From the IMG/VR virus record IMGVR_UViG_3300036715_004471, positions 62,001 to 126,000 of that record: a DNA stretch of 64,000 nucleotides; one strand, given 5' to 3'. Below are positions 48,034 through 62,464 of the stretch, in pieces. Position 1 is the first letter of the stretch; the number at the start of each line of letters is the position of its first letter. The notes under the pieces are model-generated. The model ran no database searches and was not told the origin of the DNA. It saw only the letters and a list, made by a program, of their open reading frames with translations. Both the position numbers and the translations under genes were made by a program.

Positions 48034-48068
48034 TGGCACGCCTTCTGCTCAATGCAAAACCCGTGCCT
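48034..48068. promoter_or_regulatory. Head-to-head double sigma54-type element
   Basis: TGGCACG-CCTT-CTGCT-CAA-TGCAA-AACC-CGTGCCT. Confidence 0.7.
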
Positions 48069-49007
48069 CGCACAAAAAGAAACGCCAAACGCCCGGCACC
48101 CATCGCTGGGTACCAGGCGCTCGAACGTGTGTGGGTATGCGCGTCTCACCCGAAGCCTTCCTCATCGGGACTTCCTATTGACACGGGAGGATCGTTCCCT
48201 CCGCGATGGGACTTACACAGATCCGCGCATGGCGTCCGCCTCGTGGGCGAGCTTGCGCATGAACTGTTCGATCTCTGCGATCTCCGTCTCCCAGCAACGA
48301 TGCGCGCCCGTGCGCGAGTTGCCCCACCCGAGACCGATGGTATTGAAGATGTCGTAAGAGCCATCCTCCTTCCTGAAGAGGCGACACCCTTGAACGATGA
48401 TGGGTGTCGCCTCTGGCTTCTTGGATTGCCCTAAGAAATCTAGGAGGGCTTGATATGCCTCCGCGTTCATGCCGACGGCGCTTTTCGCCGACGTTGGCGA
48501 AGACGCGATGGGCAGCGGTAGACGCCGAGCGAAGCTCGGGGAGTCGCATCATGGCGAGCGATCTCCGCGAGCACCTGCGCGCGTGTCTTGAACTTGTCAT
48601 TGCCGCCAACGCGATTGGCGCCACGTCCGTCCAGCGCACCCAAAGCGAGGGCGAGCTGTCCGGTAGCATCCCGAGATTCGGGACCAGTGTACCGCTCGCA
48701 GGCGCGTGCGGTTCTCCAAGCTCTCAGGTAGAGCGGATAGACATCGGTGTCCACGCGGATGGGATCAGCCGACGAAGTAGATCGCGCCGGGGACCGCTGC
48801 GGCGCAGACCAGCGAGGTCAGCAGAAAGCCGACGTTGGCGGCGGTGAGGCGCAGCTTGGCGGCGTAGAGGAAGCGCTGGTAAAACGTGGTGGGGATCATG
48901 ATCGTGTGCATCCTTCCGTGAGGAGGGGTTCGATGGGGAAGAGAGAACCTTGATCGAAACGATGAGGACTCACCCACCCGCGCGAGTGAGTCCTCAACCG
49001 ATGGGCA

Positions 49008-49571
49008 TCAGCCCTGCGGAGCCGCGGCGGCAGCCTCAGCGGCAGCCGCTTCGGCGGCGGCGCGCTGCTCGTCGGCGATGGCGGTGAGCACCGCGGTCGC
49101 CTCGCCGAAGGCGATCCCGAGCTTGGAGTCGGCGCCGAGCTTGCTCCACGTCGGAGCGAGGCGCAGCTCGGACCCCTTGCCCTTCTGGTTCTTCTGCCAG
49201 AACATCGTGTCGGAGCCGGGCGTGCCGGTGTTGTCCTTGAGGAACTCGCCGATGATCTCGACCAGGGCGCGCTGGGCGTCGATGGTGGCGAGCTGGGCGA
49301 GGATCATGTTGTTGGCGACCATGCTAGCGACGGTCGAGCCGCTGATCTCCGCGGTGCGGTACGCCAGGGTGTTGACGTAGAAGGCGAGCACGCTGTGCTC
49401 GACGTAGGGGAGCCAGGCGCCGCGCTCCGCCATCATCGCGTCGAAGTCCTCCTTGTAGGACTTCCAGCGCTCGTCCTGCGTCTCGCAGTCGCGCTCGAAC
49501 CACGCGGTGTAGAGCGCGGACACGTTGACCTTGGAGCCGGTGCGGGGGACGGTGAGACCTCGGAACTTCAT
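49008..49571 (-). CDS. Hypothetical protein, paralog of 19208..19711
   Basis: AGGAG RBS, very high GC3, shared motifs. Confidence 0.75.
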   Translation of the reverse strand: MKFRGLTVPRTGSKVNVSALYTAWFERDCETQDERWKSYKEDFDAMMAERGAWLPYVEHSVLAFYVNTLAYRTAEISGSTVASMVANNMILAQLATIDAQRALVEIIGEFLKDNTGTPGSDTMFWQKNQKGKGSELRLAPTWSKLGADSKLGIAFGEATAVLTAIADEQRAAAEAAAAEAAAAAPQG

Positions 49572-49836
49572 GGGGGAATCTCCTGCTGGGCTTGATTGCC
49601 CTCTGACGTTGGTGCGCTACGAGCGCTGATGGGAACTTGTTAGAACTGCGATGGTCGGGGAAACCACTCCAGTTCCTGAGCTACTTTAAGCTAGCTCGTT
49701 TTTCGTGGTCGACACACTACCCAACCAGCTTGCCCCGGTTGATGGGTAGTGCCACATGCGCCACACGGAAAACCATTCGCAAGATTCAGTCCGGCTCAGT
49801 GCCGGCAACTTTTAGTCTTGCCAGTAGATGATGGGC

Positions 49837-50451
49837 TCAGCTCGCGGCGAGCGCCTCCGCCACGTCGGCGGAGAGGAGCACCGCGCCGACGCTGTTGTCG
49901 TCGCAGAGCAGCGCCGCGTAGGAGTCGAAGGCGACCGGGACGATGGGCTCCGGCACGTACTGCTGGCACCGCTCGCGGATCCAGGCATCGACCTCGGCGA
50001 GGACCACGGCGCGGGCGTTGTACTCCGCCTGCGACGACTCCGGGTTCTCGCCGAACTTGCGGAGATCCCGCTGGTAGATGGGGAGCCAGGCGACGAGCAG
50101 CTCGAACTTCTCCGGCTCCGCCGCGAAGAGCAGCTCCGCCTTGGCGTTGTGCTCCGTGACCTTATTGATCTCGCCGGCGCGATGGGCGACCTTGTTGTTG
50201 TCGTTGCCCTTGAACTTGCTGGCGCGATCGAAGAGGTTGGGCTGGACGCTCTTGAGCAGCACCACCTTGCCCTCGACCGTCTCCGGGATGGGACTGCCGT
50301 CGGCGAGCCAGGCGGCGCGACGGACGTGGTAGTTGGGGTGCTCGCTGCACTCCGCCGGGATGGGGGCGCCAGCGGTGGCGGCGATGACGATGAGCGCCAT
50401 GGCGGAGGCGCGGGTGATGGTCTTGGTGCCGGAACGGTCGTAGGTCTTCAT
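49837..50451 (-). CDS. Hypothetical protein
   Basis: High-GC3 ORF; stop followed by G-CCCATC. Confidence 0.7.
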   Translation of the reverse strand: MKTYDRSGTKTITRASAMALIVIAATAGAPIPAECSEHPNYHVRRAAWLADGSPIPETVEGKVVLLKSVQPNLFDRASKFKGNDNNKVAHRAGEINKVTEHNAKAELLFAAEPEKFELLVAWLPIYQRDLRKFGENPESSQAEYNARAVVLAEVDAWIRERCQQYVPEPIVPVAFDSYAALLCDDNSVGAVLLSADVAEALAAS

Positions 50452-60569: not shown

Positions 60570-60598
60570 GCGAGGAGAGGGGGAACCCCTCTCCTCGC
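60570..60598 (-). terminator. Hairpin after the 60607 gene
   Basis: 13-bp stem GCGAGGAGAGGGG/CCCCTCTCCTCGC. Confidence 0.55.
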
Positions 60599-60606
60599 GG
60601 GAGACA

Positions 60607-61953
60607 TCACGCGCGGGGCGCGGTGTTGAGAATGCCGTGGCTGTCGGAAGCGGTGTCCCGCTCGATCGCGGCGGCGCTGACGATGGTGCCCACGGGCAGG
60701 TAGGCGTGCGAGCGGCTCGCGGTGTCATAGATGCGGAGCGCTTCCTCGAAACACGCGGTCGCGCCGCGGGAGTGAAGGGCGGCGCTGACGCGCTCCACCG
60801 TATCGGGATCCGAGGGACCGCTCGACTCCAGGGAATCGAGATCCGCGCCAATCTGGTCGAGCCGCTCGTAAGCGAGCGCCTCCAGGCGAGCGAGGGCGGC
60901 GTCGAGATCCTCCGCGCAGCCGGCGCGGAACTTAAAGCCGTCCACCTTGTCCTGCACGTCCGTGATGGGGTGCAGGTACGGGAGCAGGGGGGCGACCACC
61001 GGGGAGGGAACCTCGATCACGCGGTAGCCCGCGTTTTCCAGGACCGCCTCACGAACCAGGCGGCGGTTCACCTTGACCTTGGCGCCGGACTCGTCCGTGA
61101 TGGGGCGAGCGACCACCTTCGTGTGCTGCTCGATTCCCCGAGTGTAGGGGAAGTTGCCGAGGAGCTTGGCGGAGAACTCGACGTGCTCCCCCGCGAGGAC
61201 GTGGGCGCGAAGGTCCGCGAAGAGATCCAGCTCCTCCGCCGCGATGACTTCCCGCTGGCAGAGATCCAGCCCGAGGGCGCGGATGGGGTTGGGCATCCCC
61301 TTGACGAAGCCCGTGGTCCCCTCCTGCCGCGCAGCGTAGGCGTCGGCGGAGCGGTGGGCGCGGATGGGAGCGGGGAACCCCTCGTCGCGACGCGCCTCGA
61401 TGTTCAGCTTGGCGTGCGCGTCCCGACGCGCGGCGTCGAGCTGCGCGCCGTGGGGCTCGCCGGAGGCGTAGCCGCAGAAGGCGATGAGGCTGGCGCGCTC
61501 GTCCTTCTTCTGCTCGGAGGAGTCCCACACCATGATGGGCTCGCCCTTCTGGTTGAGGCGGAGGGAGCCCGCCGCGTGGACCTCACCCGTGATGGGATCG
61601 GTGGTGTCGATCTCGTAGCGGGCGGGGCGCTTGCCGGCGACGCGGAGCGCGGTCAGGATGCCCGCGGCGTCGAGCCCGCCGGTGCAGGGGATGTTGACGT
61701 TGACGGCGCGGGGCGCCGCCTTCTCCGCCTTGTCGGCGGACTTCGCCTTGCGACCCTTGCGACCCTTGCGCTCGGCGGGCGTGATCAGGGTCGAGCCCTG
61801 AACGTTCGCCGTCACCGTGGTGCTCGTGGCACCGATGGGGTTGGGGGTCTTGGCGTACGACGCCATCAGCAGGGCGGTCGCCGCGGGGTCGCTGGCGAGG
61901 AGGAGGGCGAGAGAAGCGGTGGCGGCGTTGGGACGGGAGGCACGGAGAGTCAT
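60607..61953 (-). CDS. Large hypothetical (probable early) protein
   Basis: 448 aa, very high GC3, first gene downstream of the largest sigma54-type cluster; no family recognised. Confidence 0.75.
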   Translation of the reverse strand: MTLRASRPNAATASLALLLASDPAATALLMASYAKTPNPIGATSTTVTANVQGSTLITPAERKGRKGRKAKSADKAEKAAPRAVNVNIPCTGGLDAAGILTALRVAGKRPARYEIDTTDPITGEVHAAGSLRLNQKGEPIMVWDSSEQKKDERASLIAFCGYASGEPHGAQLDAARRDAHAKLNIEARRDEGFPAPIRAHRSADAYAARQEGTTGFVKGMPNPIRALGLDLCQREVIAAEELDLFADLRAHVLAGEHVEFSAKLLGNFPYTRGIEQHTKVVARPITDESGAKVKVNRRLVREAVLENAGYRVIEVPSPVVAPLLPYLHPITDVQDKVDGFKFRAGCAEDLDAALARLEALAYERLDQIGADLDSLESSGPSDPDTVERVSAALHSRGATACFEEALRIYDTASRSHAYLPVGTIVSAAAIERDTASDSHGILNTAPRA

Positions 61954-62241
61954 GGCGGTGACCTTTCGTTAGAGAGACTTGACCCGTTTGGGACCAACCC
62001 CAACGGGGATGGGTCGCTCTCCGTTAGGGCGCGGTAGCTATCTGCTACCGCCTCGCGGTGTCTTGCGACCCGCTTGACTACGCCAGCCGGGAAGGCTGGA
62101 TGGGAAGCGCACCATTGCGCTTCGCCCGGCTAGCTCATCAGGGAGCGTCGCCGGTATCTCACCACAATTAGTGCGATTGATGGGCTCCCCCTATTCTGAT
62201 TGATGTGCTCAATCTCCCCTAGCTCGGGGCTCGGCAGCCCT

Positions 62242-62464
62242 CGGCATCGATCTTGCATCTTGCAATCTTCGTGCCAGTCGTATCAGTCCATTCAATATAT
62301 TGGTCCGACCTTTGCATATTGCAATCTCTAGACCATATCGTCAATTCTGTGAAAACAGAATTGGTCTTGGCATATTCAATGCAATATGCAAAGAGAGTGC
62401 CAAGGTAAAAAGGAAACGCGAAAGGGGAGCCCGAAGGCTCCCCGCGACTGGCACGGATCTTGCT
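62242..62464. promoter_or_regulatory. Three double sigma54-type elements plus one single site
   Basis: Dyads at 62242-62276, 62301-62335 and 62368-62402 (the - half of the first is a perfect TGGCACG-AAGA-TTGCA); single + site TGGCACG-GATC-TTGCT at 62449-62464. Confidence 0.75.
62424..62443 (-). terminator. Intrinsic terminator with UUCG tetraloop
   Basis: GGGGAGCC-TTCG-GGCTCCCC on -, followed by TTTCGCGTTTCCTTTTT. Confidence 0.75.

Follow-up and report, generated by a model that had tools for sequence, protein, structure and literature searches.

Sigma-54 (RpoN) is the one bacterial sigma factor that cannot open DNA without an ATP-driven activator, and its known promoters are single -24/-12 boxes served by an enhancer-binding ATPase, with the consensus YTGGCACG-N4-TTGCW (PMC3352281). 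Phages were thought to use sigma-54 rarely, the textbook exception being Pseudomonas phage YuA, which shows that a phage can depend on host sigma-54 (annotated in its sequence record; PMC10914365). Three other described systems resemble parts of the locus considered here: the promoter-early stem-loop cassettes (PeSLs) of T4-type phages, in which a stem-loop terminator is followed at once by a sigma-70-type promoter between small variable genes (PMC2839356, PMC4122927); the sites of LuxO/NtrC-family enhancer-binding proteins, for which the LuxO consensus is TTGCA-N3-TGCAA (PMC3352281); and symmetry-derived bidirectional sigma-70 promoters, in which one symmetric DNA element could load polymerase in either direction. 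In a huge uncultivated phage we find a 35-bp inverted pair of sigma-54-type boxes, repeated just after terminator-like hairpins, which appears to be an undescribed, phage-specific way of using (or trapping) the host's sigma-54 RNA polymerase.

The stretch analysed (herein referred to as the window) comprises 64,000 nucleotides, positions 62,001 to 126,000 of IMG/VR record IMGVR_UViG_3300036715_004471, and belongs to a 446-kb viral contig from a microbial-mat metagenome. The original prediction, made from the sequence alone, described eight copies of TGGCAC-N6-TGCW-N3-WGCA-N6-GTGCCA with a 3-bp central spacer, in four clusters with 59-71 bp between copies, each flanked on its right by an A-rich tract and a hairpin that was judged clear at two clusters and imperfect at the other two. 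This observation is confirmed: all eight elements are at the predicted starts (table 1), with start-to-start spacings within clusters of 69, 71, 59 and 67 bp. None matches the pattern exactly, but four match with up to 2 mismatches and seven with up to 3, whereas 100 dinucleotide shuffles gave 0. Read on the - strand, the flanking tract and hairpin are a hairpin followed by a U-rich tract, and folding shows that all four are present, including the two described as imperfect. All 16 halves score 9-11 of 11 scored consensus positions and 15 of 16 keep both GG and GC. Genes across 45.6-64 kb lie almost entirely on the - strand by third-position GC, so the + halves do face no gene, as had been claimed. 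To these elements we add a ninth, single, perfect box on the + strand just beyond the cluster-4 hairpin; a dyad with a flanking single box recurs in other loci. No comparable boxes occur in the left 48 kb of the window. Separately, the hexamer CCCATC occurs 245 times on the - strand and 3 times on the + strand.

Table 1. Dyads, single box, predicted hairpins and neighbouring features, in window coordinates. Loci recovered with the dyad are given L numbers; the X4 relative is a roughly 83%-identical relative in run X4.
Feature	Coordinates	Strand	Description
Dyad 1	48034..48068	.	Only copy in cluster 1; - strand half AGGCACGGGTTTTGCA, + strand half TGGCACGCCTTCTGCT; one mismatch to the pattern; - strand start inferred near 48042, 12 nt past the C of the -12 GC
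Dyad 2	54981..55015	.	Gene-proximal copy of cluster 2; three mismatches
Dyad 3	55050..55084	.	Terminator-proximal copy of cluster 2; two mismatches
Dyad 4	59520..59554	.	Gene-proximal copy of cluster 3; only change in the X4 relative at 59547, a spacer position
Dyad 5	59591..59625	.	Terminator-proximal copy of cluster 3; + half has TTGTA instead of TTGCA; no change listed in the X4 relative, whose replaced segment begins right at the dyad edge, at 59624
Dyad 6	62242..62276	.	Cluster 4, nearest the 448-aa gene; - half TGGCACGAAGATTGCA, 11 of 11 scored positions
Dyad 7	62301..62335	.	Cluster 4; weakest copy, a symmetric variant (TGGTC...GACCA) with the same TGGTC change in both halves; not found at 3 mismatches or fewer
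Dyad 8	62368..62402	.	Cluster 4; - half TGGCACTCTCTTTGCA, 11 of 11 scored positions
Single box	62449..62464	+	Non-dyad sigma-54-type box TGGCACGGATCTTGCT, 11 of 11; points away from the cassette, beyond the hairpin, antisense to the 69-aa ORF at 62463-62672
Hairpin 1	48070..48124	-	Intrinsic-terminator-like hairpin (48085-48124) plus U-rich tail, directly upstream of dyad 1; -36.9 kcal/mol, z -5.5
Hairpin 2	55086..55149	-	Hairpin plus U-rich tail upstream of cluster 2; -25.7 kcal/mol, z -3.3
Hairpin 3	59627..59686	-	17-bp GC-rich hairpin (59649-59686) plus U-rich tail upstream of cluster 3; -45.9 kcal/mol, z -7.8
Hairpin 4	62404..62446	-	Hairpin (core 62424-62445) plus U-rich tail upstream of cluster 4; -20.3 kcal/mol, z -2.6
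448-aa ORFan	60607..61953	-	First gene after cluster 4, leader of about 290 nt; homologues beside dyads in four other viral contigs (L013, L027, L048, L075)
ORF-poor stretch	47400..48030	-	About 650 nt after cluster 1 with no convincing ORF; a long leader or a non-coding RNA; CCCATC about every 110 nt

The strict dyad occurs in 118 stretches of the viral collection but in only 4 stretches, all MAG contigs, among 596 Gb of bacterial and archaeal genomes from 185,579 species. A known host repressor operator, which had been named beforehand as a finding that would overturn the prediction, is hence excluded. In 113 non-redundant viral copies, unconstrained positions also follow the sigma-54 consensus (T before GG 0.88, R after TGGCAY 0.88, mirror positions 0.87-0.95), and no flank is conserved within 20 bp on either side. 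Spacer complementarity is 26% and the spacers if anything avoid complementarity, so that a hairpin or cruciform model is rejected in favour of a protein site. The motif is found in viral contigs with 33-60% GC and very different gene content, which points to a conserved host factor. Dyad loci also hold about 269 single boxes in 1.04 Mb, whereas control viral loci hold 20 boxes and 0 dyads in 0.4 Mb; monomeric recognition, as by sigma-54, therefore fits. Among 30 dyad clusters from related huge-phage loci, the 90 nt upstream fold at -30.9 against -19.8 kcal/mol downstream (p = 2e-4), and a T-rich tract adjoins upstream in 13 of 30 and downstream in 1 of 30. The gene-directed half is closer to consensus in 25 dyads and the other half in 3 (p = 2e-4). 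The X4 relative carries 43 substitutions and 14 gaps over 59300-59624, of which 1 listed change falls in the 69 dyad bases, against 42 substitutions and 14 gaps in the other 256 bases.

Searches for a cognate regulator or an informative relative were largely negative. A phmmer search with E. coli PspF and NtrC against the six-frame translated window and about 1 Mb of loci gave no hit, no RpoN homologue was found in the same sequence, and no dyad contig is among the viral contigs carrying an RpoN box or a GAFTGA motif (34 contigs for EKGAFTGA); however, only 64 kb of the 446-kb genome was covered in full, and a host activator is not excluded. One dyad locus (L087) encodes a sigma-70-family factor, not sigma-54. 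Megablast and blastn of the window and of dyad loci against 50,697 phage records gave no match, and relatives found through proteins (Roseobacter phage CRP-171, Pelagibacter phage HTVC027P, uncultured phage LR756508 and virus Rctr197k) have no dyads in the parts examined. No gene family neighbours the dyad consistently across phage groups, the largest cluster being an artefact of translating the repeats themselves. The genes downstream of the window clusters are ORFans; for the 448-aa protein no Pfam or PHROG family matched, the atlas search was uninformative and the structure model was of low confidence. The Kyano_Gp96-like and GDP-mannose dehydratase genes gave no clue to the host, Rfam reported only tRNA matches in the window, and two hits in the genome collection (L126 and L129) lie inside long ORFs. 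A search for transcript data listed no RNA run.

We hypothesize, with a probability of about 0.5, that each cluster is a composite terminator-promoter cassette, like the PeSLs, at the start of a - strand transcription unit of small, early-like phage genes. In this view the intrinsic terminator closes the previous unit, and one to three tandem dyads then load RNA polymerase carrying the host's sigma-54. The half facing the genes would act as the working -24/-12 promoter, with a start site inferred about 12 nt past the GC, inside the other half, whereas the opposite half would be a second sigma-54 site, kept by selection, that makes the element work in either orientation and sometimes lies at divergent gene junctions. 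The sequence match, the position, the conservation, the asymmetry between halves and the restriction to viruses are established by our analysis; binding and transcription by sigma-54, the start sites, early timing and the source of the activating ATPase are inferences, and we suspect that the activator is a host enhancer-binding protein or an unrecognised phage factor. Several observations sit uneasily with this model. Neither an enhancer-binding ATPase nor an upstream activator site was found, and the non-productive half is nearly as well conserved as the productive one, which a plain promoter does not need. Single boxes showed no clear orientation towards genes (6 with, 11 against, in a small and noisy set obtained with a simple ORF caller too crude to decide gene context). 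In one AT-rich phage group the boxes lie upstream of near-perfect sigma-70 promoters that could drive the genes on their own, and leaders of 230-650 nt are long for promoters. The interpretation originally placed on the dyads is thus partly supported: each half is a sigma-54-type box, and the elements sit at the start of - strand units just after terminators, which fits promoters of early-like cassettes, but the three roles proposed for the dyad (activator-independent opening, a sigma-54 sponge, or a site for a dimeric phage factor with RpoN-like specificity) cannot be told apart by sequence, although an obligate dimeric factor is made less likely by the abundant single boxes, by a head-to-head spacing that varies from 2 to 4 bp and by the stronger gene-directed half.

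Two alternatives are both unlikely on present evidence. The dyads may be a trap or roadblock that holds sigma-54, or its closed-complex holoenzyme, without initiation, either drawing down the scarce host sigma-54 or backing up the adjacent terminator and insulating the cassettes, with the real promoters elsewhere. This is consistent with the conservation of both halves even where only one faces genes, with dense arrays of alternating orientation (four dyads within about 170 bp in L034, and the arrays in L117), with the failure to find an activator gene, with the abutting terminators and with L094-type loci, whose genes have their own consensus sigma-70 promoters 68-70 bp beyond the dyad; however, a pure trap has no reason to be polar or to sit only at the start of units, and in the window no sigma-70-like promoter follows the dyads. 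Alternatively, the dyad may be the operator of an unidentified symmetric phage regulator that turns the cassettes off or on, either a protein with RpoN-like specificity or an NtrC/LuxO-type dimer that reads the inner TTGCA-N3-TGCAA. The two-fold symmetry, purifying selection on both halves, specificity to viruses, identity of the inner 13 bp to the LuxO consensus and the matched variant of dyad 7 would all suit such an operator. Against it are the abundant single boxes, the head-to-head spacings of 2 bp (12), 3 bp (39) and 4 bp (10) in unselected copies, which a rigid dimer should not tolerate, the absence of correlation between halves at degenerate positions (if anything they differ), and the lack of a shared neighbouring family or a detectable RpoN, NtrC or PspF homologue in the sequences searched. 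A bipartite site identical to that of sigma-54 is also unlikely to arise independently.

Less likely still is a genuinely bidirectional promoter whose second half makes a functional antisense or divergent RNA. In loci with GC of 0.50 or less, dyads lie at divergent junctions of ORFs of at least 100 aa in 30% of cases against a 14% baseline, and L011 has a perfect dyad between divergent genes; yet half of the junction-classified dyads (55 of 108), and all eight in the window, lie between co-directional genes, where the + half faces only the back of a terminator with no U-tract or ORF beyond it. A further reading, which we consider unlikely but cannot exclude, is that the dyad is a virus-specific class of promoter or landing pad that lets phages exploit the poised sigma-54 holoenzyme without a DNA-bound enhancer, through an unrecognised phage or virion protein or a host stress-activated ATPase triggered by infection. 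Its second half would give orientation independence or hold a second sigma-54, and it would act together with the equally unexplained polar CCCATC code of this huge-phage clade.

The palindromic element occurs in about 165 viral contigs, ranging from contigs of a few kb (many probably fragments of larger genomes) to genomes of 330-480 kb, and is essentially missing from the bacterial and archaeal genomes. Phages therefore do something with sigma-54, or with its DNA code, that cells do not, which opens to direct experiment how sigma-54 is activated during infection, whether two sigma-54 molecules can occupy one dyad and whether phages drain or redirect this polymerase pool. The element is also a compact, portable and possibly orientation-independent regulatory part, and a sequence marker for early or hyperplastic regions in uncultivated huge phages.

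Compared with known sigma-54 promoters, the bipartite box is identical (TGGCAYR-N4-TTGCW, with GG and GC exactly 10 bp apart) and lies upstream of genes, but here two boxes lie head to head, 3 bp apart (2-4 bp in other loci) and often in tandem, an arrangement almost absent from bacterial genomes; YuA has annotated sigma-54 promoters but no dyads and only weak boxes. As in PeSLs, a stem-loop directly upstream of a putative promoter is repeated between small variable genes. Cassette exchange occurs at the module in PeSLs; here there is one case only, the X4 relative, in which a swap of 196 bp starts at the dyad edge (joint at 59624/59821). The promoter part in the window is a sigma-54-type dyad with no sigma-70 consensus, whereas a sigma-70-like site is present in L094, L009, L110 and L050; L094-type loci carry a stem-loop, a near-perfect TTGACA-N17-TATAAT, a Shine-Dalgarno site and an ATG, as described for RB49/phi1, with the sigma-54 boxes inserted between the stem-loop and the sigma-70 promoter. 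LuxO sites share the inner 13 bp of the consensus dyad, but lie upstream of the sigma-54 promoter rather than over its -12 element and do not carry the conserved outer TGGCAY blocks, and the dyad spacing varies. Symmetry-derived bidirectional promoters likewise could load polymerase in either direction from one element, and dyads are enriched at divergent junctions, but the sigma factor is different, the two halves of the dyad share no base pairs and half of the classified dyads lie between co-directional genes.

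All eight of the predicted 35-bp dyads were found where they had been placed, and the observation behind the original prediction therefore stands. None of the eight is a perfect match to the proposed pattern TGGCAC-N6-TGCW-N3-WGCA-N6-GTGCCA; four match with up to 2 mismatches and seven with up to 3, whereas 100 dinucleotide-preserving shuffles of the sequence gave none. Start-to-start spacings within clusters are 69, 71, 59 and 67 bp. Third-position GC shows that the genes surrounding the dyads lie almost entirely on the - strand, and the A-rich tract and hairpin originally described to the right of each cluster is therefore, when read on the - strand, a hairpin followed by a U-rich tract. 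All four of these hairpins fold well (-36.9, -25.7, -45.9 and -20.3 kcal/mol, with z-scores from -2.6 to -7.8), and the order along the - strand is previous gene, terminator, one to three dyads, a leader of 230-650 nt and then small genes. The longest of these leaders has no credible ORF before the next convincing gene and may be a long leader or a noncoding RNA; Rfam and ARAGORN searches found nothing there.

The window is part of IMGVR_UViG_3300036715_004471, a 446,541-bp viral contig from a microbial-mat metagenome, and has no DNA-level relative among 50,697 phage records. The left 48 kb carries an RNA ligase, a UvrD-type helicase, HNH endonucleases and tRNAs, whereas the dyad region consists of ORFans, with a single tRNA gene among them. 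The coordinates of the dyad-associated features and of the other cargo are collected in the table below.

Coordinates and strands of features in the window and in related dyad-bearing viral loci (L numbers denote loci of viral contigs; L001 continues the window to its right)
Feature	Position	Strand	Remarks
Left part of the window	left 48 kb		about 50% GC
Step in GC content	~48000		from about 0.50 to about 0.61
Fall in GC content	~64000		to 0.37 just beyond the window end (L001:1-3953, window-equivalent 64001-67953)
Region with genes almost entirely on one strand	45.6-64 kb	-	by third-position GC
Dyad copy with variant halves	62301		the same TGGTC variant in both halves; the one copy not matched with up to 3 mismatches
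Ninth box, single and perfect	62449	+	beyond the cluster-4 hairpin
Single sigma-54-type box	window-equivalent 64092	+	TGGCACGACTCTTGCC; precedes an AT-rich leader of about 330 nt and a lone 243-aa trypsin-like protease gene; a similar box with the same downstream TCCCAAA..AGGGGTA occurs in L111
Stretch of about 650 nt between dyad 1 and the next convincing gene	47400-48030	-	CCCATC at 48007, 47894, 47785, 47675 and 47565, about every 110 nt
Segment replaced in the relative in run X4	59624-59821		196 bp replaced by 74 unrelated bases; holds the terminator and the end of the upstream gene
CCCATC hexamer	1-64000, densest in 40000-64000	245 on -, 3 on +	commonest - strand hexamer
tRNA-Asn(GTT)	58046-58125	-	inside the dyad and ORFan region
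tRNA-Leu(CAA) and tRNA-Lys(TTT)	37214-37288, 37610-37683	-, -	further left
tRNA-like matches	37367, 28028		two weak Rfam matches
Other cargo: a weak, below-threshold match to a cytidylyltransferase plus phosphoribosyltransferase fusion (possibly NAD salvage), an RNA ligase, two HNH endonucleases, and a GIY-YIG/NUMOD3 homing endonuclease just outside the window	11130-12392, 14711-15937, 27385-28824, 40486-41484; L001:259-1059	-, -, +, -;	
Small-gene modules of an AT-rich phage group	L094:5700-6010 and 7650-7960		also in L009, L110 and L050

The dyad is widespread in viruses and nearly absent from cells. A search of the viral collection with a loose pattern, GGCAY-N5-TTGCA-N3-WGCA-N8-GCCA, hit at least 120 stretches, and in 113 nonredundant copies the positions that the pattern had left free are also symmetric (T before GG, 0.88; R after TGGCAY, 0.88; mirror positions, 0.74-0.95). 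The full element is therefore TGGCAYR-N4-TTGCW-N3-WGCAA-N4-YRTGCCA, each half of which equals the sigma-54 consensus YTGGCACG-N4-TTGCW (as quoted in PMC3352281). The N5 spacers are complementary at only 26% of positions and degenerate positions in the two halves tend to differ rather than agree, indicating a protein-recognition element and not a hairpin. The strict 35-bp dyad occurs in 118 stretches of the viral collection but in only 4 stretches, all of them MAG contigs, among 596 Gb from 185,579 bacterial and archaeal species, where about 0.5 would be expected by chance. About 165 viral contigs carry the dyad, spanning 33-60% GC and including at least fifteen contigs of 180-480 kb. A known host repressor operator, which the original prediction had named as a case that would refute it, is therefore excluded. 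Many dyad loci lie at the very ends of their contigs (for example L016, L037, L040, L068, L003, L014, L035 and L094), and either dyad-rich regions sit at genome termini or the repeats break assemblies.

Promoter-like function is supported by the layout of the dyads relative to genes, for which we used the hexamer CCCATC (CCCATT in some relatives) as a guide to gene direction in the huge-phage relatives. The 90 nt upstream of 30 dyad clusters fold at -30.9 kcal/mol, against -19.8 kcal/mol downstream (p = 2e-4), and a T-rich tract adjoins upstream in 13 of 30 clusters and downstream in 1 of 30; the terminator-then-dyad arrangement is therefore the general layout and not a quirk of this window. 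The half that faces the genes is closer to consensus in 25 dyads and the opposite half in 3 (p = 2e-4). A roughly 83%-identical relative in run X4 shows selection directly: it has 43 substitutions and 14 gaps across 59300-59624, of which only one listed change falls within the 69 aligned dyad bases, at a spacer position. The segment replaced in this relative begins exactly at the dyad edge. Together these differences fit both purifying selection on both halves and cassette exchange at the element.

The hexamer that served as this guide is itself markedly polar, and in the dyad region of the window it occurs with a median spacing of 114 bp and more evenly than chance would give (CV 0.69). Copies occur in frame as Pro-Ile within genes (all 7 copies within the 448-aa ORF read CCC-ATC), directly after stop codons (39 copies), often exactly 23 nt before the next ATG (14 copies lie at this distance from an ATG preceded by a Shine-Dalgarno site) and about every 110 nt in noncoding leaders. 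The same one-strand motif, codirectional with genes, is present in other viral contigs of 200-480 kb that also carry the dyads, as CCCATC in L037, L006, L016, L042, L085 and L111 (for example 45/0 in L037, 43/1 in L006 and 103/6 in L085) and as CCCATT in L027, L072 and L075, and is therefore a trait of the clade. It could be a polar DNA signal, a phage-specific start or processing signal, or a self-marker.

The dyad loci also carry about 269 unpaired boxes in 1.04 Mb, whereas control viral loci have 20 boxes and no dyad in 0.4 Mb. Among copies that the search pattern did not select for, the head-to-head spacing is 2 bp in 12, 3 bp in 39 and 4 bp in 10. Recognition of single boxes, a flexible spacing and an identical motif in unrelated phage groups all point to host sigma-54 rather than a rigid phage dimer. 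However, we found no RpoN, PspF or NtrC homologue in the window or in about 1 Mb of loci, and only 6 viral contigs carry a canonical RpoN box and 34 carry EKGAFTGA, none of which is a dyad contig.

We consider the most likely reading (probability of about 0.5) to be a terminator-promoter cassette whose promoter is a sigma-54-type box read by host polymerase. The sequence match, the terminator-then-dyad layout, the asymmetry between the halves, their conservation and the near-restriction to viruses are shown by the analysis, whereas binding by sigma-54 and transcription by host polymerase are inferred from sequence alone. The interpretation first proposed, in which these elements are early promoters built from head-to-head sigma-54 boxes, is partly supported. 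The mirrored second box is conserved, and may provide orientation independence, a second sigma-54, a roadblock or an antisense start.

The alternatives are less likely. A sigma-54 trap or insulator and an operator for an unidentified symmetric factor both appear unlikely, to a similar degree, and a true bidirectional promoter more unlikely still. Arrays of up to four dyads within about 170 bp exist, and single boxes showed no clear orientation toward genes, albeit in crude tests. Dyads are enriched at divergent junctions (30% against a 14% baseline), but half of those classified lie between codirectional genes. The flexible spacing and the abundance of single boxes weigh against a rigid dimeric phage factor, whereas in the AT-rich phage group described below the boxes may modulate a neighboring promoter or act as a trap rather than drive the gene.

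Sigma-54-dependent phage promoters have a precedent in Pseudomonas phage YuA; YuA has no dyads, however, and our literature searches found no description of this palindromic arrangement. In the AT-rich group (L094, L009, L110 and L050), each small gene is preceded by GACGTAAG...CTTACGTC stem-loops and four sigma-54-type boxes, arranged as a reverse box, 8 bp, the dyad, 18 bp and a forward box, followed by a near-perfect TTGACA-N17-TATAAT 55-70 bp from the dyad, a Shine-Dalgarno site and then ATG. This module is like a PeSL, as described for T4-type phages (PMC2839356, PMC4122927), with added sigma-54 boxes.
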